From the NCBI GenBank assembly GCA_964035545.1, contig OZ037766.1, positions 21,130,767-21,194,766 on the forward strand: DNA of 64,000 bases. The letters are read 5' to 3'. The position numbers were made by a program, and so were the translations under genes. The stretch is from Bugula neritina. Its lineage: Eukaryota > Animalia > Bryozoa. Positions 39,642 to 55,135 of this stretch are shown one piece after another. The stretch's first letter is position 1; each line of letters opens with the position of its first letter. Below the pieces are notes generated by a model. It was not told the DNA's origin. It saw nothing but the letters and a program-made list of their open reading frames with translations, and did no database searches.

Positions 39642-41026
39642 TCATATAGGCAGCAATTCTGCCCTTGGTATATCCAGAACAACATCCATGTCTGGTGTAC
39701 ATTTTGTTTCATATTTAAACAGCTCTGGAAAAACCTGCAAACGTACATTTGTCTTTGGGTGAGCAAGGAGTTGCTTCACCTCTTGTCGCAATGATTCCAC
39801 ATTCAAGCTTAAACTCGCGATTTGCTCTTTGTGATAGTCTATTTCTGCCTGCATAACTTGATTTTGTTTAGCCATTTCTTTCAAACTCGGATGCATTTGA
39901 TTTAGCACTGAGTTTAGTGCTGATTCTTTGATACTAGTTTGCTCCTGATTACCTGAATAAAAGTGATAACAGTAAAAGTCTTTTAGCATCTGATTGCAAC
40001 ACACTATTCACATTAACACATCATCTCAAATAATAATGGTGACATAGTGCTAGAGTCTAGACTGGCTATAAGGAGTGAAAGATATATGCATTAATATTCG
40101 GGCAAAATTTAACAATATACAACATGACTTAAAGAAATATATGTAATCTTGTGAAGGTCATTTGGATTCAGAATGCATACTGCATGATTAACTTTTTCCA
40201 AATTGATCAAGAAAATGTATTACATAATATTAATCTAACATAGGTAGCTAAGTATACCTTCTCTAGAAAGTTTTTGAAGCTCATCATCAATTACTCGTTC
40301 TAAATCATAGTATTCATCATCATTGGCAAGCTCGACTTGGTCTATCTCAGTTAGTAGTTCTCCTATTCTTATTGCTTTTACAGGATATTCTTTATCTTTG
40401 TAATTGTTCAGAACATATACCTGATTTTGGCGCTCTTGCAGTTTAGTGTCTAAGACATCAACTTCGTTTTCCAAAAAACTAAGGTCTTTTTCTAACCTTT
40501 CTTCTAATATCTTCAATTGATCGCTTTCATATTTTAAAGTAGATGTAAAGTTATCGTTTAGATACGAAATGCCACCTCTGAATTTTTCATAGCGCCTCAT
40601 AAGAATTTTTACAGCTTCATGATTTGGTCTTTCCTCAGCAACTATTTCTTTTTTTAAAACTAAGTTGCTTTCAATTAGTTGTCTCTCTCTTTTTTTACAG
40701 TTTGCAATAGCAGATTTTGTAGACAATATCTGTAGCTCTAGTAATTGAGTTTTCTCCGTTTCATCATTTTCAGTAGTCGTTAGCTTAGCTAAATGTCTAT
40801 GTTTTAAATGAGTAGATTTATTGGTGAAACTAGTTTTATTAGTGACAAGTGGGCTGAAGGAGTTTTGTAAAGACCTTACTCTAGTTCCAGCTCCAGAGTT
40901 ATTAGTACTAGTAGCCGTCACCGTGTGAGCTAACTTTCTTTCCCATTGAGAGTAAAAATTTGGTTCAACAGTTGTTGGTTGTGTAGAATAACTTGTTTCA
41001 ACAACTTTTGCTTTGCCGGGTTCCAT
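39642..41026 (-). CDS. C20orf96: C20orf96 / DUF4618 family coiled-coil protein
   Basis: Exons 41026-40258 and 39952-39642 (phase 1); motifs YKDKEYPVKAIRI and C-terminal VFPELF..KCTPDMDVVLDIP recognised from the family. Confidence 0.8.
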
Positions 41027-41712: not shown

Positions 41713-43170
41713 ACCAAGTAGCTCAGAACTGTTACTGTAAGTCAATTAATATTGTTTAGAATGTTATTATTACTATTAGTATTAGTATTACTATTACAGA
41801 TTAGTATTAGCATTACTGTATAAGTAATCAGTGAATGTAATCAGTAATGATTACAATAAATATAAATATAATGCAAATTATGTAACACTAACTAATTGAC
41901 CAATTGGAATTTTCTAATTGGAATTGTTTTCCTAATTTTTGGCATACTGATAGTGATACTGATACTCGCATTCATAGTTATGGCCTACTTGTACTCACAT
42001 GTTTTAGTAATTTTAAAATGGTTTTTTCAATAATAAACAAAACAATTTTTACTTTATTTTTTTCATGAAACTATCTAGCTGTAAAAGAGCTGCTATAATT
42101 AAAGTGGTCACAATGGCTGTCAAAAGTAACTAGCTTTAACTTTCAAGTCATGATGATATAACTATAAGAATGATCACCGTGATCATGATCATCACTTGCT
42201 CACTTCGTCCTTTATTCGTAGCTGTAGAGCTTCAGTTAATGACATTAACTGCGAGAGTTTCAGAAATAGATTAATTATTATAGTCATTGCAATAGAAATA
42301 TTTGATAAAATTATGGTTCTCAGTGATAATCATGATGACATTGATACATCATTATACCAGTGCTGACTAGAGTAGATTACTTGAAATTTATTTACTTGAC
42401 TCGCCTCGATTACCTACTTGACTCAACTTGAATTGAAAAAAGTTCAATTGACTTGCTGCAAGTCAAGTGCCTAATTTATAGCAAACTCTGAGGTGAATGT
42501 TGGAAACCTAATTATTTAGTACTGTTTAGGGAAATTATATCGATAAATTTTAATTTCAAAGCTGTTAAACTCAGTTAAAGTGGTGTGACAGCTGTTGCAA
42601 TTTATTAATTCGTAATTAAAGTAGTTATTTTTAATATGTAGATTTTTATAATTTTTTTCGAAATGGCTACACATAAAGCTGCAAATTTATCCCTTTTATT
42701 AAAACTGCTAAATGTGTTTGGTTTTGATCTCAATTGAAAGATTCAATTTTGGTTAACACCAAATTCAAATTGATACTCTCAGTCTGATTTTAATGTTGGA
42801 TAGGTCAATATATGCTCAGTTTTTTCAGTTACACTGCTCGAGTTGCTAGTTTAATTTAATGTTTAACCCTTGCTAAGATGCAATTTTAATATAACTAATA
42901 ATGTTTAAAAAAAGGACATCAACATATACATATATTGTAATTTACAACACAAAGTAATGCTACTATGCACATCAAGGTTTCAATACTTGAGAAAGTTTGA
43001 GCACTATAGTTTTTTTTCTGCAAAAAATGTGTCTTGGGTGAAATGTTTTTAGTTGTACAAAGAGTTTCAAGCAGATGAATTCAGACATTTCATCATTTTT
43101 TGTCTTTGTTTTTAGTTGGTTTCAACTGAAGTCCGCTTTAGTGACAGTTGGAATTAATATTGTATACCTG

Positions 43171-46100
43171 ATGGGAAAAGACAGTATGTATAAAACCTCA
43201 ATTATTTTGAGTTGTACTGGTTTAAATACTTTTGATAGCAAGTTGTCTTTTTAAACATAATTGGTTGAGATATATGTCTTAATTTTTAATTGAAATATGA
43301 ATATTTTATTTTTAAATAACAAAGTTTTGAGTTTTTCTATAAGTTGGGAAAGGGTAAGATATATGTATTAATTTTTTCACTCAGTGTGTTCTTTATTTAA
43401 GTTAAAATCAGCTTCAAAGATATATTATGAATACGTTTGTATTTCTTTGACTGCTTTCTGTAGGTGAGGTCCCTTTGGAAGAAGGGCAAAATGCAGAAAA
43501 AGGTAGGTTGTTGATGAATAAGTGTAACTAGTTTGTTTACATGCTGACCATTCTATCAATGTACTAAAGAATATTGGAATACGTTTGATAGAGACAATCA
43601 GGACTGTGACAAAGCGCACTGGCTCTGTTAGGAAAACTTCAGCTGCCAAAAAGGTTAAACCCTCTCCTACTGCAAATGCCAAAAGTAAAAGTCGAAAAAG
43701 AAGTCCAGCAAAAGTTGACACACCAAAGCAGTTAGACAGTTCAGGAAACCAGCAAGGTGTGTAGTGTGCTAGTCTATTGATTTAAGTAAACGAGTGAATA
43801 GTGTTAACATCATTTCTAATAGCCTATTGTATCACAATATATACCTAAAGCTAGCTTCTGTAATTCCATGGGTCAATGTTTCACAACTTGCAATGGATAA
43901 CCTTTTGCATCAACTATGCCCGAGTATATTCTAGTGTGAGTATATTCTAGTGTGAGTATATTCTAGTGTGTGTTTAAAACTTCATTTCCATATACTCATT
44001 ACTGCAATAGATTTATTAAAACTCAATATGGGTCAATTTACTTTGTTTAGTACACGTCAGCAAGTTATGACCAAACATTAAAGTTTGCTCAAAGTTCATT
44101 GAAATTTACTATATGGGGTATTTTTATGTGCTGATTCTAATAAAACCTTAATTATTAAGCTTGTGTTTGTTACTATTCTATTATATTAAGACAAGAAATC
44201 ATATACATTAACTGGTAAATTGTGAAAAGTAGCTAAAAAATAGAGATATATAATGTGTACTAAATTAAATAAAATGACCTTCATCACTAAAACAGATTAT
44301 TGTCTGAGTGGAAGTTGGTTTCATAGATGTTTAATTTTGAGTTGTAAATCTAGAGAGAGTTTCTGAAAATGGCACGCCAGTGAGAACTGAGGCTAAAACT
44401 TCGAGTAAGATGAGTTTGGAAGAGAAACGAAAGGCGCTTCAAGCTGAAAGACTGCGCAAAGAGCAAGAAATGAAAGAACTTCTGGCTCAAGAAGAAGCCT
44501 TGTTGAAAGCCGCTGAAGAAGATGGTAATTTATAAATATACATGTGTACAAATAGGGGGAGAAGGAAAGAGAGGGGAGAGGGCAAATTTTATTCTATTCA
44601 TGTATCTACCTGCTAGAAATGAACAACTATCAAAAACTTGTATGCAGTAAAGTTCTTAAGCGAAGTAATGAAATGTTTATTTGTATCCAAGTGTTTATAT
44701 TTTGAACAGAAGAGATGAAAGTGGAAGACATAGAAGTTATGGAAACCAGTGCAGAATTGCCAGAAGATATTCTCAACCAAGATTCTTCTGAGATCCAGTA
44801 TGACACAAGAAGTGAGGCTGGTGGAAGCCACGAAGGTGACCAATCTAGGCAAGATGGTATGTATATATATTTGTTTTCTGTTCTAGTAACAAGATGACTA
44901 ATTCAGTACTTTTGGTTTGTTTTATTACAACTCTCATCAGATGTAATTTGAGGAGCTTTAGCTAATGCAATAGACTGTAGTTATATTACGAGGCTCTCAA
45001 TGTCGTTTTCTGATTAGCAATCATCAAAACTGATACTCAGTGTGATCTTTAACCGCTAATACATTTGCTCAAGAAAGTTTCTAAAATAATTGTCAGAAGT
45101 TGACACTTTTTTGGACAAACAAAGTTACAACAAACATTATTTAATCACATTAGAAGAATCACAGCATTCATTAATACTGAAATATGGTTTTAATATTGGG
45201 TAACAAAAACGCAAAAGAAAATACTTGTTTACTTAAAATGTCTTACAGGTCAGTTTTGCAAATTGTAGTTTACGTTGTGCAACTTTTTACGAGGCTATTT
45301 TATCAATTATTTGTTTTATGATTGTTATGTAACATAACTGTGGAGAAAAAGTTTTGTAGCTCCTTTTTTGTATATTATATAATAATATCTTTTGGAAACT
45401 TTGTGCTCAACTTCGTCGTTCTTAGTAATAAAAAACTTAAAATAAAACGAGAGTAAGCAATAATCAGTTGAAGTATATTTTGCAGAAGATTTTGAGTCAA
45501 TGGATGAAATGGCAGCTGATAGCTCGGATGTCAACCCATTAGGAGACTCTCTGGCCGATGAGGTTGAAGAAACCGAGGACTGTGCGCTAGATATGAAGGA
45601 GGAAGGCGGGCTGGCAGGTTTAGAAGGAGACGAGGACGAAGAGTTTACGGATTTTGGAGAAGAGGAGAAAGCAAAGGCCATTTCACCTGTGACTTGGGAC
45701 GTAGATGTCCATGCCAATCAAGATGATGATAATATTTCAGTGAGTTTGTAAAATCTGTGACTTAACCCCAAAAAAGTACGATATTTGCAGATATAAAAAC
45801 TGTTGGAAAATTTGCGTAATGTAATTCTGGTCTAAAAGCCTTTATATGCACACTAGCCAACATTCTAACACCAGCATGAACAGTTTCCCAGCAGTTTTAC
45901 ATTTTGTCTGTTTTGGCTCATTTTTGTGAAAAATGCAACTGTTTTTAATCATCACTTTTTTCTTTTCGGACTATCATACATTTTGCACATTCAAAAATTT
46001 ATAAATAATAGACATCTTTTAAACAGCCTAAACTGATTAGTTTGGCTGACTTAAAGTTACATATTGCTGTACTAACAATCTGTGCAATACTAAGCTCTAA

Positions 46101-49100
46101 CTGTGTTAAAACAGGTGCAAAAAATTTCTCTCTATTTAATACAAAGAATTTTGTCAGCAAGAAAATTAGTTAAAAGCATGGTGTCTCAATATATTGTTTA
46201 TTATATTCAGTTTTTGTGACGGTCGGTTTTAATGGAAACATTCAAATGTGCACATGCTTTTGGAACAACTAACAGCATGGCGACATGTCCTTTACGTAGA
46301 TTATGTGAAAGCTGGTATGTTTTATCTGCAGGTTGATTCGCCTCTCAACTCCGGAGATGAGTCAGAAGCCAATGATGAAGAGGACACAAAGGAACCCGAG
46401 AAATCCGACTCGTCTGAAAAAGTTGAGGAGACGCCCCCTGCTACTTCCGAGCAAGCAAAGTCTGGGAGACAATCGGCGCACAGTCGACTCTCCCTGGATG
46501 TGATAAACGAGAGAGCAGAGCAAAGTGTGAGACAACTCTAAATATGTAATGGTTTTCATATGTAATGGTACAGTACTGGTAGGTGACTACTGGCCTAGTA
46601 CTTGTTCACCTTCAAGGCTGGTCACCTATTCGCAGCCGAGTAACATACGGCTATGTAAGTTCTTTTCTAATCTTCATCCTAAGGAAAATCTGTGTTCTCT
46701 CAAACTCTTTAGTTGGACTCACTCATGGTGGTTTACTCAAACTAGTGCAATACTTAGAGCTAGCTTTGAATGTTAGCAAAGGTCACCCGTACTGTATTAT
46801 ACTGTTTACTGCGAGAATGCTTAGCAAAACTAATTGCCAGTTATAAATGTTGATAGCACATTTTTATTTACTATTTAAATTGTTTTTGTTTCCCGCCACC
46901 CGCGCAAGACCATGGCGGTGAAAGGTGGCCAATTGAATTGTTTTTATTTGTATAGAAAGGGGCAGACGCAGCAGAACTCTTGCGACCTCGTGTTCACAAG
47001 TACCTCTACAGAGAAGCCAAGTACTTTATGGTTAAAAGTAGTAACCACGAGAACGTGAGGCTAGCTAAAGCTAAGGGTGTCTGGTCTACACCTCCTCAAA
47101 ACGAGATCAGATTTAATAAAGCTGTTGAGGTAAGATAACAGTGGTCTGCTCATTTTACTTTAGTGTGCTGTTTTTCTTTTGTTGCTCGATTCTATAAAAA
47201 TTTAGAGCCATGTATGCCCCTGGACCACTATAAACTAGATATTATAAATTGTTTATATGGTTTTGACTTTTGAAAACATGATTTTTTTTATAAATTTATA
47301 TGATCTAAACAGTAAAAACTACTAATAAAGTTGCTTACCTTTTTAATTGTTGCTGGTCTATAATTCCTGGTAGCCACTTTCTGACCAGAGTTGTTGGGAC
47401 GACACATGTTTAGGGCAGTATGGTTAACAGCTATTCTCACAATGTTTTGCTATTGGGATGTGAGAATGTGCGAGTCCCTACACATCTAACCAGGTAGTGT
47501 CTGAGAGTTATGGGTTCGTTGCTCCATGTTGTAGGAGAATACTACAGTCATTTTGGTCTTCTCTGTCAAAGAGAGCGGCGCCTTTCAAGGATTTGCTCGA
47601 ATCAACGGACCATCTCAAAAGGATGGCCCGAAGATAGCTTGGGTTCTACCCCCTGGTATCAGTGCAAAGGCGCTGAGTGGGGTCTTTAAGCTTGATTGGA
47701 TTAGCAGGTATGCCTCATCAATGTGCAGCTGGTTTGATTGAGTAATCTTTTGATGTGGTGTACAATTCAGAGTCTTCAATTCAGGTAGTACAGTTGCCAG
47801 GGTGCAAATATTGTGTAGTTGATGGTATGGTCACAACTGACCATAGTGCTACTCACTATTGTATAAAGTCCATGTAATGTATTAGTTATTAGTGCTACTC
47901 ACTATTGCATAGAGTCCATGTAATGTATTAGTTATTAGTGCTACTCACTATTGCATAGAGTCCATGTAATGTATTAGTTATTAGTGCTACTCACTATTGC
48001 ATAGAGTCCATGTAATGTATTAGTTATTAGTGCTACTCACTATTGTATAGAGTCCATATTATGTATTAGTTATTAGTGCTGTGTGACATTACAGGACGGA
48101 TTTGGAGTTTCCTAAAGCAGCTCATCTTCGTAACCCTTGGAATCAGAATAAACCTGTTAAAATAGCTCGTGATGGACAGGTGATTATGTTCATTTCTCAC
48201 TGCCTTTTTCTTCAGAGTGTCTGTTTGCACTGAGTAAATGGGTGTGGTTTACTCTCAATACTCAGTATCTGCTCCTGTTTATAGGAGATAGAAACTTACG
48301 TAGGAGAGGCGCTGTGTAAGCTATTCACTCTGGACGGATCGAGCGACTACGAGCGAGTCATATCTCGAGTAAAAAGGAAGAGAGAAGCTCTGCAGGCCAA
48401 GGGTCCGATCCCTCACAGCCGACCTCCTTATAGGTTAGGTATCAGAGAGAACGAAGCTTGAGGTTGCGTTGCTCTCGTGTCAAGGTCAAATATAGAGCTG
48501 GGCACCTGCTCTGGTCTGCTCAGCGATGCGACGAGTAATTTGAAAGCAGCTCCACTCTTTATTGCAAATTGTATTTGCATTTATTTTGCCAAAAAAATAT
48601 ATTTGCTTTTTATTACGTAGATATGCAGCTGCAAGGCCCCTGTGCCACTCTGTCAGCTAATGAACGCTCTGTAGATTGGACGTTTTGTTGAAAATATTTG
48701 AGATGGAAATCATTCTTAAGGCAGTTTTAAAAGTTCTGTAGTCTAAATGTAATGAGGGACTTTGAGCTAGTAACCCGTAGATCTACATTTATACAGGCCA
48801 GTGGAAATGTCTGTCTGTTCCAACCTATTCTATCTATATAGTGATGTCACCACCAACTTGTATCATTGTGTATGCGGTGTTATACAAAGGACTTTGGAGA
48901 TAGTTGTATACTTATGGTGTAGCAAAAGACTTTCTGGTATATATACTAGTACATGGTGTTGTTCTACAATTAGGATTTGGAAAGGACTTATTGGTAGTTA
49001 TATACAATAATTTTACACATGAGGTATTAGGAAGGACTCATGTGTAAGCCTGTATATTTATAGATGAACTTTTCAGTTTATTAGGTGACATGTTGTACAT

Positions 49101-52100
49101 CTAGGGTCATACAAGAGACTACCAGTTGTATATGCTAAGTCATACGCTCTTTATGCTGATGCCACCTTACATGCTTCTGGTTGCACATGTAAAAAGAAAC
49201 ATTGTGTTAGCTTTAAGGTTTATTTCACTGGACAATGAACTGTATTAGATGCAGTAAACCTGCATCATATTAATAGATAGGTTACAAAAATTTGCCATCT
49301 TTTAACTACTCAAGAAAATGAACTGTATGACACAGCTTATGAGTCTAAAAGCCTAAAAGTTCATAAATGGTATGGACACTCTGCCACCATCCCTATTATC
49401 TCTGTCTATTGGTTTTTACCTGCGATTTGAATGCTGTAACTACGGTATGTTCTTATGTTCCCAAACCCATTCTCATATGTGATGAAATTGCAGATTTATC
49501 TTATCAACCCTTTGTGTATAAACAGGAGTTGTGTACACCTGTCTAGTGTAAGATATCGGAGGCATACAGTGTTGCCAATAAGTATGTAATATTTGGTGTT
49601 GCATAATATTCAAGCACATTATTTCAACGAGCTATACTTGTTCCTGGTTTGCTCATGTCTTTCTTTATGGAGGCTGTTGCCATGTATTTTTGAAAGAAAA
49701 GCAATAATTGCGTAGCTGGTAGATATAATGAACTTAAGCAAATATTGCTAACTTATTGCCAACACTGTATTTACAGAATTGAAATATGTACTGATAAATA
49801 TGCAACTGCAATGTTTTGCTTTAAATTTAAAACCTCTGCAGAGTAGTAGAATATTGTTTCCCGGTGTTGATATTTCCCTCCTGTAATAATAGTTGCTGTT
49901 AAGACCATGTAACCATGATACATGAAGCTATAAAAAATAGTTGTAAAAGTTGCTCAAAATTATCGTAAAATAGCGTGTGTTCTCTGCAAATAGTAGTTGT
50001 CACTTGTAACTAGCAATGCCGTGAACATGGTCTAGCTATTTAGCAATAAGAGAGTTCCATATTTGGACTTTTATAATGTAATGCAGGCTAAACTCCGGTC
50101 ACAGTAATCATCCTCATTCCAGCCAATCGCAGCCTCATATTAGAAGCAGTTACTCTGATCAACGAGGTAGAGGGAGAGATGGGTCGGGGTACCGGGGCCG
50201 AGGGGGTTCTAGTAATAGGGGTGGACCTATGAGAGGGGGTTATCGAGGCGGACCCCCTCCTCATTCTCCTGCATATTCTGCTCGTCCAAACCCTGCCCCT
50301 CACCACCATTCATCACCGTCTCAAAATTATTATATGTCAAGTGGGCGAAGCTCTTATGGTAGCAGGAACAGCTATGGTCCAGGTACTGTATCTTTATAAG
50401 GTTGCTATCGTTTTGTTTATGTTTTGATATCCCTGGTGTAAGTTTCACACAATCTAGTTACTTTGTGTTGACAGCCTCGTCGTACCAGCAGTCGCCATTG
50501 CCATCTTACCACACCTCCGTGCCTCCGGTCTCAACTGAGATATTTGTTAAAGGGGTAAGTGATTTGTAAATGTTTATGCTCTGAGTCCGCATGTCTACAA
50601 CACAGTTAACGTTCTATTCACTTGTTAAGTTGTTCTTTTTTGTTTTGTTTTGCATGTTTAGTCTTACGAGCAGTATCTCGACCAGATGAGCAGATCTGCC
50701 ATGGTGCCTGATCTAAGGAGTCCAATGGTGAGTAGACAACTCTAAGTATAATTAGAGGAGTTCAAAGTCATGTGTTTTTAGAGCTCATTATCTTACATAG
50801 CCGTATGAAATACAAAAAGAATCGCCTTAATAACGGCTTGCATTTTATAAATCACTCAACTTTGTTATTAACAGCAGACCTTTCACTAATAGTTGATTCT
50901 GTGCTAGACATTTTTATGCCAATATCGTTTAAGAGTTGCACAGTTTCATTTCACATTTTGGTTACATCTTAATGGTCTTTTTTTCTAATTTTGTAGTGAT
51001 AAGAGATGATAACTCTACTAGTGAGAAGTAATGACATTATTTTGTAGCTATTTGCCATGCCAAGGGCAAGACACTTAACTCATCAGGTTGTCTTAAGCCA
51101 ACATGTTTGTTTGTTTCTCCTGTAGCCAATGTATGACCCATACTCGGCATCTTACCACACAGGAAGTCGGGATGCTCCCCCGCCCCCTCCTATTCCATCC
51201 TACTCTTCCAGTAGAGACAGAGAGAGAGGGGGTAGACCTAGTGTGGACAAGGTATGTTTGTATATAATTATATTTTTTTACAGTTTCATTCCCATATTAG
51301 TGTATAAAGTTTAGCCCAGTAACTAAATACTAACAATTGTTTTGTTTTTTTCAATTGACCAGTTTTAGTGAATATTCATGTCGGTTAGCATCAGAAGGAA
51401 CTCAAAAACCTGTGTTCTTAGCAGGCAGTTAATATTTTGATGGTAGAGCTCACTGTTCTACTCTGTTAGGCTTGCTGCACCAACCCAGCTTAGTGAATGG
51501 CAACAGGTGGAAGGTTCCCTGCCCTTAGCATTTATACATATAAGCTCAACCCTAATTTATAGCTCAACCCTTTAATGCCTTTTCCAGTAAACAAGCACAT
51601 TCAATTATGCTAGTGTAATTGGTCCTAAGTTTTTTACACTGCACCATTGTTGAGGTTCTACCACTTGAGAAAATTGAATTTTTCTTGGATTTGCTAGAAC
51701 CTACATGTATATTCATGAGCAAATGATATTCATCCAACAGTAAAGCGGGAAGAAGTACTAGTTGTACAAAATATCAGAAGATTTGCGGTTTGTGTGGGCT
51801 CTATTGTTGCACTAGCTGACTAGCACATACACATGTAGCACTGTTGGTGTCTACGTTTATCTTCTTATTTCATCCAAGAAAATTCTAAGAATCCAAACTA
51901 TCATAAATCACCCAAGTCTTTTCAAGTAACCACATTATAGTCTTTTGTGATGCAATTTTCAGCCTCATTGTGATTTTTTCAACTGTGTAAGTCTTGGGTT
52001 GTTCTGACTGTGCAGTGATTATCCCCCCTCTCTTTATGTCGATAGACCTGTGATCCAAACACTGTAAAGGTTTTTAATCAGTGCAGGCAAATCAGTGTGT

Positions 52101-52675
52101 ATAGCATGAGAAACAATTTGTCTGCAATGATTTATGTTATGTTTAGAGTAAGTGATGTAGCTGTACAATAATACTTGTTAATATGGTGTAAGTCAACAAA
52201 GTTTATATAACTCTAGTTCACATGCTATATAGTATGGTATTACACAGTTTATAATGTGATAGTGCATGTGCTATATTATGCTAGTTCATGTGCTTTATTG
52301 TGATATTACACATGCCATAGTATGTTAGTATACATGCTATAGTATGCTAGTACATGTGCTATAGTATGGTATTACGCATGCTATTGTATGGTATTACATA
52401 TGCTATATTGTGATAGTACGCATGCTATGATATGATAGTACACATGCTATAATGTCATAGTGCGTGTGGTTGCTATAGTCTAATTGTTGTTATAGTATGA
52501 CAGAGCTGTTGAGGATTTCCTTCGGCGTACCTCGGGGAGTAGTAGTGGCAGAACTGGCCGAGGTGTAGACAGCAGGCATAAAAGTCGAGAAGTAAGAGAA
52601 GTTCGAGAGTACAGGGGAAGAAGCAGATCGAGAGAAAGATATGAGAGAGAAAGACACCGAGGTGATCGAAGGTAG
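43171..52675 (+). CDS. YTHDC1: Nuclear m6A reader YTH domain-containing protein 1
   Basis: Exons 43171-43183, 43464-43502, 43592-43756, 44354-44524, 44710-44856, 45486-45739, 46332-46526, 46956-47129, 47535-47707, 48095-48179, 48285-48433, 50087-50382, 50475-50554, 50662-50727, 51126-51251, 52496-52675. YTH motifs [61 protein letters not shown]; YTHDC1-type IFVKGSYEQY and [12 protein letters not shown]; acidic N-terminus, R/E-rich tail. Confidence 0.94.
43922..43969. repeat. 3 x 16-bp tandem repeat
   Basis: gagtatattctagtgt x3. Confidence 0.85.
47844..48080. repeat. 46-bp minisatellite, 5 copies plus a partial copy, in a YTHDC1 intron
   Basis: tagtgctactcactattgYatagagtccatgtaatgtattagttat starting at 47844, 47890, 47936, 47982, 48028, 48074. 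Confidence 0.95.
49567..49767. mobile_element. Tc1/mariner-type MITE (~200 bp)
   Basis: TIRs cagtgttgccaataagt / acttattgccaacactg (1 mismatch), TA on both sides. Confidence 0.8.
52215..52478. repeat. Degenerate ~22-bp minisatellite upstream of the last YTHDC1 exon
   Basis: Recurrent catgctatagtatg / tagtacacatgctat units. Confidence 0.75.
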
Positions 52676-54403
52676 CCTCACTGTGTCTAGTCAAGAGCGT
52701 TCTGTAACAAGAAGAGCTTGAGCACCGAACACACACTTCAGAATATTATGCACTAACATTTTTGTTTCCTCAAAACATCATGTTATTTTTCCAGTGATAT
52801 TTTTATTGCTGAAATTTGGCACGAGTGCTGTGTTATGCACTGGTCACTCTGTATATTTTTAGTCATTCTGCATGGTAAATGCTATACTATAGGTGTTGTT
52901 TCAGGCTTGATGATATTTTAATAGGGTTAGTGTAAATACTGGATGTTTACTTGTATATAGTTTCATGGAAGATAGAAGTGTTGTCACTTATATTGTATGA
53001 TTTCTGTTCAAAAATACACAATACTTGATATAATCCAACATAATGTATTACATTGGCAATCTTGCCTATTCACATGTTGGAATGCAAGCAGTAGGGTGAA
53101 TACAATAGTAATTTATTATTAAAAAGGATAATCATTTGAATATCACATTGCAATAATCTAAGTTGATTAAGTATAAGCATTGCACCTGCTGGCTTGCTAT
53201 TTGTTAGTTACCTTCATTCAATGTCTACATGCTACAGTGGCTAAAAACTAACTCCACCTGATTTGTGGTGTACTAAAACCATTACTTTGGTTGCTACAGT
53301 ACATTAATAATACTGTCAGTGCCTGGTTGACAGTTGTTGAGTAACATTTGCTTGAGTAGGCTAGTCACTTGCAGCATGTTGACCAGCCACTACTGCTACA
53401 TGCACAGTAAATATACTCTTATGGGAATTCCATCTTTGTATTTTGTCTTTTATTGATTATACCCATATATAGTTTAAGTTACAATTAAATGACAATAATA
53501 TAGCTTATCTATGGGTGTGCTTTAACTGATGATAGAATGGATACCTAATCTATCCAAATTTAATGGACTGTACATGTTTTAATTTGCTTGTTTGACTTTA
53601 TTACCAATTATTGGGTGCTCTACAGTTACTTTATTCTTCACTATAATGTGCTTTACACGCATGATAGAACATTTTGGCAAAAAGTTATTTTAAAACTGAG
53701 TTAGCTGCTACAAAAAACACATTGGTTAGTAATAACTTTGGCTAACTTTCTCTGTCATAAGTATTTCTGACTATGCTGGTATTGTGATTATAAATTAGCA
53801 ATAATTTGTGTTGTACAGTAAGTTAACAAATATGCACAGCATAACACTGAAGAACAATGCTGAGCTGATGAAGTACAATGTTACATATTTGCAGCTGCTG
53901 TAATATTGAAACCAGGCTGCCTTATCAAAATGCTTTGATCTCACCAGGTGTGACGCCATAAACATTTATTGCCATGTAAAAAAGATGATTTACTGCATCT
54001 AGCCAACTAAGCTCTAAAATTTTTGTTTGTAAGACTTGCTGACATATTGGTATGCTTTGTGTTTACTATAGCTGAAAACATTGAGTGCGATCTCTAACAT
54101 CCCTCATAATATACAGTCACCTCCATCTACAAACTCTAATTACATTCGTTTCTTTAATATAAAGAAACGAGGAACTGGTTATTATCAGTACCTTACAGTA
54201 GATATTCACTGCTGGTGAATAAAAAGAAGGATATCGCATATCTAGCTGAGCCACGCGGCATTGTGGATCGTTGCAGCACACCAGCGTGAGCTGACTACAC
54301 CAAGTTAAAAAGGTCAACGAAGACACTAATAGAGTGAACACTGCCTGCAGGGCAACACAGACATGGGGGAGTGACTCGCTGATGCTTGATCTCTACACTA
54401 AAT

Positions 54404-55135
54404 ATGATGGGTACTTCTTCGTCAAATGTGATGGGGTATTATACTCTTCTATTAACTTTATCAGCTAGTTCAGCTTGCTTGTTGAAAGAACACACCATAA
54501 GTTTAGAGGAAAACCCTCAAATTTTAACTTCGACTATAAGCTTTGCTCCATCTGAACACACCCTAGTTTTAAAGTGTCTTGGGGTGAATTTTAGCCTTAA
54601 AAAGTGGACCACTGATGACTCAATTCATGGATTTACAGTTGAAGAACTGTCTACAGACCAACTGAGTCTTCAGTTACCTTGTAAGTCAGTTAAGACTTGC
54701 AACAAAATAAGCCTAGTTTGCAGCGGCACTCCAGTTAATGGAAGTGGTCATATTGAAGTGAACGTTGTTCTTCTGCCACAATGCGATGAACTTACAAACA
54801 AAACTAGTCTTCTAAACTCTTCTGAAGTCACAGAACGAACTGAAAAGCCTTGGAACATCTCGGATATGAAGTACCTGGGTGTGATAATAGGATTCTCTGT
54901 GTGCTTCATCCTTGCTCTTATTAGTGCACTTATAGTCTGCATACAGAAGAAGTGTCACATCAGACAGTGGTCCAGGTTGTGTGGCTGTACAGGGTACGAG
55001 GCCACTCGAAGCCAAGACGATTATCATACCAGTCAGAACCGTAAGGTAGGACCTATACCAATGCTTGGCTTTGTCAGTCGAAGTAGCCACTCTGCCCAAC
55101 AGAATCAAAAGAGCAGTGCTATGCATGAGTTATAA
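54404..55135 (+). CDS. Uncharacterised type I membrane protein with intronless CDS
   Basis: ~243-aa ORF in AT-rich DNA; hydrophobic N-terminus (YYTLLLTLSASSA), Cys-containing ectodomain with N-glycosylation sequons, TM LGVIIGFSVCFILALISALIVCI, basic stop-transfer, Tyr-containing tail; AATAAA at 55593. Confidence 0.65.
   Translation: MMGTSSSNVMGYYTLLLTLSASSACLLKEHTISLEENPQILTSTISFAPSEHTLVLKCLGVNFSLKKWTTDDSIHGFTVEELSTDQLSLQLPCKSVKTCNKISLVCSGTPVNGSGHIEVNVVLLPQCDELTNKTSLLNSSEVTERTEKPWNISDMKYLGVIIGFSVCFILALISALIVCIQKKCHIRQWSRLCGCTGYEATRSQDDYHTSQNRKVGPIPMLGFVSRSSHSAQQNQKSSAMHEL

Follow-up and report, generated by a model that had tools for sequence, protein, structure and literature searches.

A GGACT-rich intron after the YTH domain of Bugula neritina YTHDC1, a probable m6A-responsive feedback element of bilaterian origin

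We analysed a 64,000-nucleotide stretch of the genome of the bryozoan Bugula neritina (contig OZ037766.1, positions 21,130,767 to 21,194,766 of the forward strand; hereafter the window, with coordinates counted from its first letter), in which the + strand gene at ~43.2-52.7 kb is identified by its sequence as YTHDC1. The intron directly following the YTH domain of this gene (48434-50086) combines a weak canonical 5' splice site, a cluster of GGACT motifs and a stronger 5' splice site about 1 kb downstream. This layout is conserved at the same position in other animals, all non-canonical routes at the intron end in a premature stop, and an oyster transcript retained exactly this intron. We consider it probable that the intron is a negative-feedback element responsive to N6-methyladenosine (m6A), inherited from the bilaterian ancestor and equivalent to intron 11 of mouse Ythdc1. 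The circuit is already known in mouse; what is new is its apparent age and its conservation as a motif grammar.

Gene structure and homology with mouse intron 11

The window gene was compared with databases one exon at a time. The exons that bear on the intron, and the intron itself, are:
46956-47129, + strand: YTHDC1 exon with the first part of the YTH domain (KSSNHEN; cage Trp in GVWST); top PDB matches YTHDC1, E 1e-12, versus YTHDC2, 6e-7
47535-47707, + strand: YTHDC1 exon with the YTH core (cage Trp in WVLPP, cage Leu in ALSG); PDB YTHDC1, E 1e-18, versus YTHDC2, 4e-4
48095-48179, + strand: YTHDC1 exon equivalent to mouse exon 10, with RDGQ at its end; phase 0
48285-48433, + strand: YTHDC1 exon equivalent to mouse exon 11, in which the YTH domain finishes; phase-2 end
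48434-50086, + strand: putative regulatory intron, homologue of mouse Ythdc1 intron 11; 1653 nt, phase 2
50087-50382, + strand: next coding exon, RG-rich, part of the productive mRNA

In the exon-by-exon PDB search the YTH exons were nearer to YTHDC1 than to YTHDC2, YTHDF or CPSF30. Equivalents of the aromatic cage residues W377, W428 and L439 and of D476 are all present (GVWST, WVLPP, ALSG and RDGQ), and the last exon (52496-52675) carries the YTHDC1 C-terminal motif YDRxVxDFLRRT and an R/E-rich tail (mollusc YTHDC1 match, E 8e-12), all in agreement with the gene name given in a preliminary description of the window. That description had also called the intron the longest in the coding sequence, which it is: its length tops those of the 14 modelled introns, the runner-up having 1244 nt, and a probable start exon at 43118-43183 would contribute just one further intron, of 280 nt. 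The residues at the positions of human L380 and M438, which contact the nucleotide preceding m6A (PMC7544203), are P and A in the window protein and in most invertebrates.

The exon 47535-47707 ends in phase 2, as does mouse exon 9. With a human-mouse offset that we take to be three residues, mouse exon 9 ends at the DWICR motif. Exons 5-9 of mouse Ythdc1 encode amino acids 296-452 (PMC5991768); since exon 9 ends at DWICR and both turbot and the window have two exons more, the window intron is, judged by exon order, the positional homologue of mouse intron 11. The window, oyster, Capitella, amphioxus, turbot and damselfly all have a phase-2 intron immediately 3' of the exon in which the YTH domain finishes.

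Mouse intron 11 bears m6A peaks and undergoes m6A-dependent unproductive splicing (Wei et al. 2021, PMC8327914). An alternative 5' splice site there yields a minor form, which falls from 20-30% to near zero after METTL3 loss, and YTHDC1 protein goes up (PMC8327914). The mammalian event named in the preliminary description is a documented one, at a homologous position. In mouse, such events follow a rule in which m6A is positioned between the two donors, with the suppressed one upstream of it and the enhanced one downstream, and the Ythdc1 knockout phenocopies these 5'-site changes.

The GGACT cluster and its conservation

The motifs of the window intron are concentrated as follows:
48757-49378, + strand: cluster of 11 strong m6A-type motifs (4 GGACT, 2 AGACT, 3 GAACT, 2 GGACA), all 5' of the distal 5' splice site

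GGACT lies at 48757, 48889, 48984 and 49034, AGACT at 48927 and 49116, GAACT at 49066, 49237 and 49320, and GGACA at 49230 and 49374, all as first listed; a fifth GGACT (50065) and a fourth GAACT (49730) had escaped that list, and 11 of the 13 strong motifs of the intron sit upstream of the distal donor at 49445. Compared with 3000 dinucleotide shuffles of the intron, GGACT was enriched (5 versus 0.74 expected, p=0.0007), as were four GGACT inside 282 nt (p=0.0007) and the longer word AAGGACT (3 versus 0.07 expected), so that the enrichment originally estimated by hand was borne out. The antisense strand of the intron contains zero GGACT, and the four-in-282-nt cluster is unique on the + strand of the 64-kb window. 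GGACT is, however, only second of 1024 5-mers by enrichment in this single intron; the window by itself therefore fails a look-elsewhere correction and is suggestive, not decisive.

Several other accounts of the intron were tried and rejected. A hosted noncoding RNA was ruled out by an Rfam search of the intron, in which nothing matched up to E=1. A transposon or repeat origin, which had been named as a possible refutation, was dismissed because the 64-kb window holds no second copy and no tandem or periodic array covers the cluster. The RNA structure across the cluster is nothing unusual (z -0.19), and intronic polyadenylation was discarded, neither AATAAA nor ATTAAA occurring within the intron. 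Shortly 3' of the distal donor there is a 32-nt inverted repeat (49564-49595 and 49739-49770; 88% complementary, 143 nt apart), single copy in the window, possibly a relic of a miniature inverted-repeat transposable element or a hairpin shortening the residual intron.

The comparison comprised 14 loci, all bilaterian: the window, three close relatives (L001, L086, L012/L073), oyster (L004), Capitella (L007), amphioxus (L006), turbot (L008), damselfly (L011) and five metagenome loci labelled mollusc-, annelid- (two), termite- and crustacean-like by protein resemblance alone. A screen of the metagenome loci for the vertebrate motif was negative throughout, and none of the contigs was judged human. 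A Diadema model ends at the exon and provided 300 nt of flank only. Exons of the relative L001 are 74-85% identical to those of the window, and the window intron had no significant alignment to any orthologous intron. In the first 1000 nt of the 14 introns, GGACT occurred 71 times in sense and 4 times in antisense, whereas 55 control introns had 0.72 per kb without strand bias (33 versus 42). Since six of the loci had been picked after their counts were seen, the test was repeated on the seven chosen by protein similarity alone. With the window excluded, GGACT was the top 5-mer (33 versus 7.2 expected, p ~2e-12) and the non-A control words GGCCT, GGGCT and GGTCT were flat, indicating that replication in other species, as far as the assignment of the loci holds, passes the look-elsewhere test.

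The position of the cluster relative to the splice sites is conserved as well. GGACT density dropped from 6.1 per kb upstream of the distal donor to 0.44 per kb beyond it, and internal GGTATGT was found in 9 of 14 lineages, compared with 5 of 55 control introns; the corresponding numbers for internal CGGTATGT were 6 of 14 and 0 of 55. The distal-donor motif is thus conserved although the introns are unalignable. The canonical donor begins GTTAG in 11 of the 14 lineages versus 2 of 93 control introns. These data support conservation of the GGACT cluster across bilaterians at the level of pattern, and speak against its being a repeat or transposon. In the comparison of orthologs that had been proposed, intron position and GGACT enrichment are conserved and the intron sequence is not alignable; total DRACH in the window intron is flat. 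Of the two origins first offered, ancient or convergent, the shared position, phase and unusual donor argue for the ancient one.

Further features of individual loci were recorded. Molluscs and annelids have an extra GTAAGT donor within the intron (L004:4250-4304, L088:2918-2982, L085:3930-3982, L083:7196-7292, L007:2681), followed in four loci by an acceptor 53-97 nt on, resembling a mini-intron within the intron. In the two insect loci (L011:61858-62770 and L068:7189-7940), GGACT stands at +8 and ~+27 from the donor, and a GTAGGTT distal donor, locally alignable between them, is likewise common to both; the damselfly intron measures 33.8 kb. Termite-associated contigs L022-L026, up to 16 kb long, contain an unbroken YTHDC1-like frame, possibly an intronless retrocopy; the intron-bearing gene is on L068.

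Splice sites, premature stops and transcripts

Scoring matrices for splice sites were derived from 92 donors and 93 acceptors, taken from other introns of the compared genes. The relevant sites and stops are:
48432-48438, + strand: weak canonical 5' splice site AG-GTTAG; score 5.1 versus a constitutive median of 8.1; kept in 11 of 14 lineages
49442-49451, + strand: distal 5' splice site ACG-GTATGTT, GT at 49445; best of 122 GT sites, score 8.3; conserved
48603-48620, + strand: candidate internal acceptor, weakly supported; second of 92 AG sites, p=0.58 versus shuffles
48459-48461, + strand: premature stop 9 codons into the intron, upon retention or distal-donor use
48658-48660, + strand: premature stop reached via the acceptor at 48621

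The acceptor ending at 48620, its reading frame and the stop at 48658-48660 are as the preliminary description gave them. Neither the weak canonical donor nor the conserved distal donor had been noticed in the preliminary description. Canonical donors at this intron are weaker than constitutive ones across the compared lineages (p=2e-5), and use of the distal donor adds 1011 nt to the transcript. A second GT at 48439 (AG-GTATCA), five bases inside the intron, would if used cause a frameshift and an immediate stop. Both listed stops follow the complete YTH domain and precede at least five exon junctions. Read-through stops after 8-70 codons in 14 of 14 lineages, and the tails are not conserved; a functional truncated peptide was rejected because these tails are mutually unrelated. 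Every non-canonical route leads to a premature stop, in line with the suggested diversion to nonsense-mediated decay (NMD) or truncation.

When the oyster assembly L093 (run ERR12311770) was compared with the genome, 15 introns had been removed and exactly this one was retained whole, whereas in oyster L005 all 16 introns were spliced. The resulting truncated oyster product of 544-546 aa was represented by at least 21 assembled contigs among the 15 cluster members listed, and the commonest full-length sequence by 19, these numbers being assembly counts and not abundances. The JGI contig L014 has contiguous YTH exons and then runs through AG-GTTAG into a GGACT-bearing intron. Truncated products stopping soon after the YTH domain also occur among gastropod-like, shrimp and tick sequences. 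Several public YTHDC1 models from molluscs, insects, chelicerates and echinoderms stop soon after the YTH domain as well (P0020, P0025, P0040, P0061, P0105, P0149, P0191, P0222 and P0302), and the tails of many of these short models begin with RL, as expected for read-through of AG-GTTAG.

Elsewhere in the window, an open reading frame (ORF) at 40235-41026 on the - strand corresponds to C20orf96 (PF15397), head to head with YTHDC1, and is 96% identical to a Bugula neritina protein and 49% to one of Watersipora. A 249-aa ORF directly 3' of YTHDC1 (54386-55135, + strand) has a signal-peptide-like start and one hydrophobic segment. A 46-bp tandem repeat (47844-48080; 5.2 copies, 97% match) occupies most of the intron 47708-48094 and produces five antisense GGACT, which usefully illustrates how a repeat can create such a cluster; the last YTHDC1 intron contains a degenerate 22-bp tandem repeat (52214-52451; 10.7 copies).

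Proposed feedback mechanism, alternatives and significance

The layout of the window intron, with motifs between a weak donor and a distal donor, is that of the mouse placement rule and supports a feedback function. In such a mechanism the productive donor at 48434 (GTTAG) would be held weak, in competition with retention and with the stronger donor ~1 kb downstream, and the ~1 kb after it would be seeded with GGACU and closed by the donor at 49445. METTL3/14 would methylate the cluster in nascent RNA, and binding of a reader, most likely YTHDC1 itself, would lower use of the weak donor. The transcript would then retain the entire intron or be spliced from 49445, either outcome leading to the stop at 48459-48461 after the YTH domain; the unproductive RNA may undergo nuclear retention or decay, or be eliminated by NMD. 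With m6A or the reader in short supply, the intron would be removed cleanly and YTHDC1 would rise. For Bugula, methylation, METTL3 dependence and distal-donor use are expected by analogy with mouse, and YTHDC1 as sensor and the route of decay are likewise predicted. The m6A writer complex is conserved in metazoans (PMC13629450), and oyster m6A occurs in DRAC (PMC10787124). The P and A residues in place of L380 and M438 weaken, for the window protein, the initial claim that GGACU is the preferred YTHDC1 ligand; the motif more likely reflects the preference of the writer. With somewhat less confidence, we lean toward the broader view that the intron is a bilaterian-wide m6A sensor acting through YTHDC1 autoregulation, which predates the split of protostomes and deuterostomes and is encoded by a grammar (weak GTTAG donor, GGACU density and distal donor), not by alignable sequence.

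Several observations weigh against such a function. Total DRACH is not enriched in the intron (28 versus 28.8 expected), and no distal-donor junction was seen in the invertebrate transcripts examined. Retention in oyster could reflect slow removal of an intron that has weak sites and is the longest of the gene. The selection of six of the 13 comparison loci after their GGACT counts were seen counts here too, as does the fact that related loci are not independent, and in the five lineages without GGTATGT the distal donor was chosen after inspection. The signature is absent in Tigriopus, in which the intron was lost, and rotifer-, copepod- and mite-like loci are without a GGACT cluster. Tigriopus has four GGACT in the ~1.1 kb upstream of the start codon (L009:1044-2113), which could be a relocated sensor or chance in this GC-richer DNA.

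The route put forward at first was a cassette poison exon, in which the canonical donor is joined to 48621, the 824-nt exon 48621-49444 is included, and translation stops at 48658. This exon would contain all 11 listed motifs, and two close relatives have a similar, locally alignable acceptor at +210/+211; internal acceptors are also alignable locally among the bryozoan-like loci, are strong in relative 1 (p=0.005) and turbot (p=0.015), and approach significance in oyster and two annelid-like loci (p=0.05-0.07). However, the window acceptor scores at chance level (6.7 versus a shuffle mean of 7.2), internal acceptors across the targets are no stronger than in control introns (pooled p=0.39), and the exon sequence is not highly conserved. 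No cassette junction was seen in the invertebrate transcripts examined, none of the 15 oyster cluster members listed carries the cassette tail, oyster shows whole retention, and the mouse event is an alternative 5' site. The chance-level acceptor makes retention or distal-donor use a better fit, and as the main route we regard the cassette as unlikely, although it could coexist as a minor form. Ahead of the 48621 acceptor, a 17-nt pyrimidine tract is present in two copies with 28-nt spacing (48566-48610); the first copy matches the acceptor tract of the relative L086 but lacks the AG, suggesting duplication and replacement of the site.

A constitutively slow (detained) intron, in which m6A on unspliced RNA leads YTHDC1 to retain it or promote its decay in the nucleus and feedback acts on RNA stability instead of splice choice, seems to us improbable to the same degree. 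YTHDC1-linked nuclear decay is established, full retention is the only such form seen in invertebrate transcripts, and besides the weak donor the acceptor is weak in several species. Yet a detained intron has no need of the strong, conserved donor that borders the cluster on its 3' side, and the mouse minor form declines on m6A loss rather than increasing. Slightly less probable still is cross-regulation in place of self-sensing, with unmethylated GGACU bound by another RNA-binding protein or m6A read by a factor other than YTHDC1. The P and A residues in most invertebrates fit this account, whereas the enriched word and the top METTL3 motif are identical and the effect of the mouse Ythdc1 knockout points to YTHDC1. 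A chance cluster, transposon relic, tandem repeat or hosted noncoding RNA devoid of regulatory meaning, to which the second rank of GGACT in the window alone and the opposite-strand cluster of the 46-bp repeat could be credited, is very improbable given the single copy, the absence of a tandem array or Rfam match, and the independent replication in other phyla with strict strand bias; the cross-species result refutes it unless the comparison loci are mis-assigned.

The m6A-responsive feedback intron that we favour shares with the mouse system the gene, the intron position, the phase, the m6A-type motifs flanked on either side by a 5' splice site, and an unproductive non-canonical product. The two differ in that m6A and splicing were measured in mouse while the bryozoan locus is known here from its DNA, in that oyster transcripts show full retention and not distal-donor splicing, and in the residues of the pocket for the preceding G (P and A in place of L380 and M438). 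The Bugula intron sequence cannot be aligned even with close relatives. METTL16 and MAT2A form another system in which homeostasis of the m6A pathway is achieved through one specific retained intron; its writer is a different one and its target is a structured hairpin in the 3' untranslated region, whereas the window has METTL3-type GGACU and no unusual structure. Unproductive splicing of genes for SR proteins, in the case of SRSF5 shared by animals and fungi (Lareau and Brenner 2015, PMC4379411), is similar in that an RNA-binding regulator carries an ancient event inserting a premature stop. The SR events are often embedded in ultraconserved sequence, whereas conservation in the YTHDC1 intron is confined to motif density and two donor motifs, and an RNA modification would be the input. 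In the literature searched, which left most subscription papers outside its coverage, neither circuit nor signature was reported outside mammals, the mouse study being the only one found.

Our results suggest that a loop demonstrated to date in mouse alone goes back to the origin of bilaterian animals. Adaptive direct control of splicing by m6A is still argued, and conservation of single m6A sites is usually regarded as poor. The persistence of a motif cluster in one homologous intron from bryozoans, molluscs and annelids to arthropods, amphioxus and fish is evidence that intronic m6A has been under selection. The question is testable with existing data, namely oyster methylated RNA immunoprecipitation and RNA sequencing, and fish and insect Mettl3 mutants. 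The finding also explains a recurring annotation problem, the truncated YTHDC1 models that read into this intron. If the interpretation is true, the intron would be a rare case of intronic m6A splicing control under selection for more than half a billion years, and it would serve as a natural m6A reporter in any animal that keeps it, giving a readout of METTL3 activity for non-model animals.

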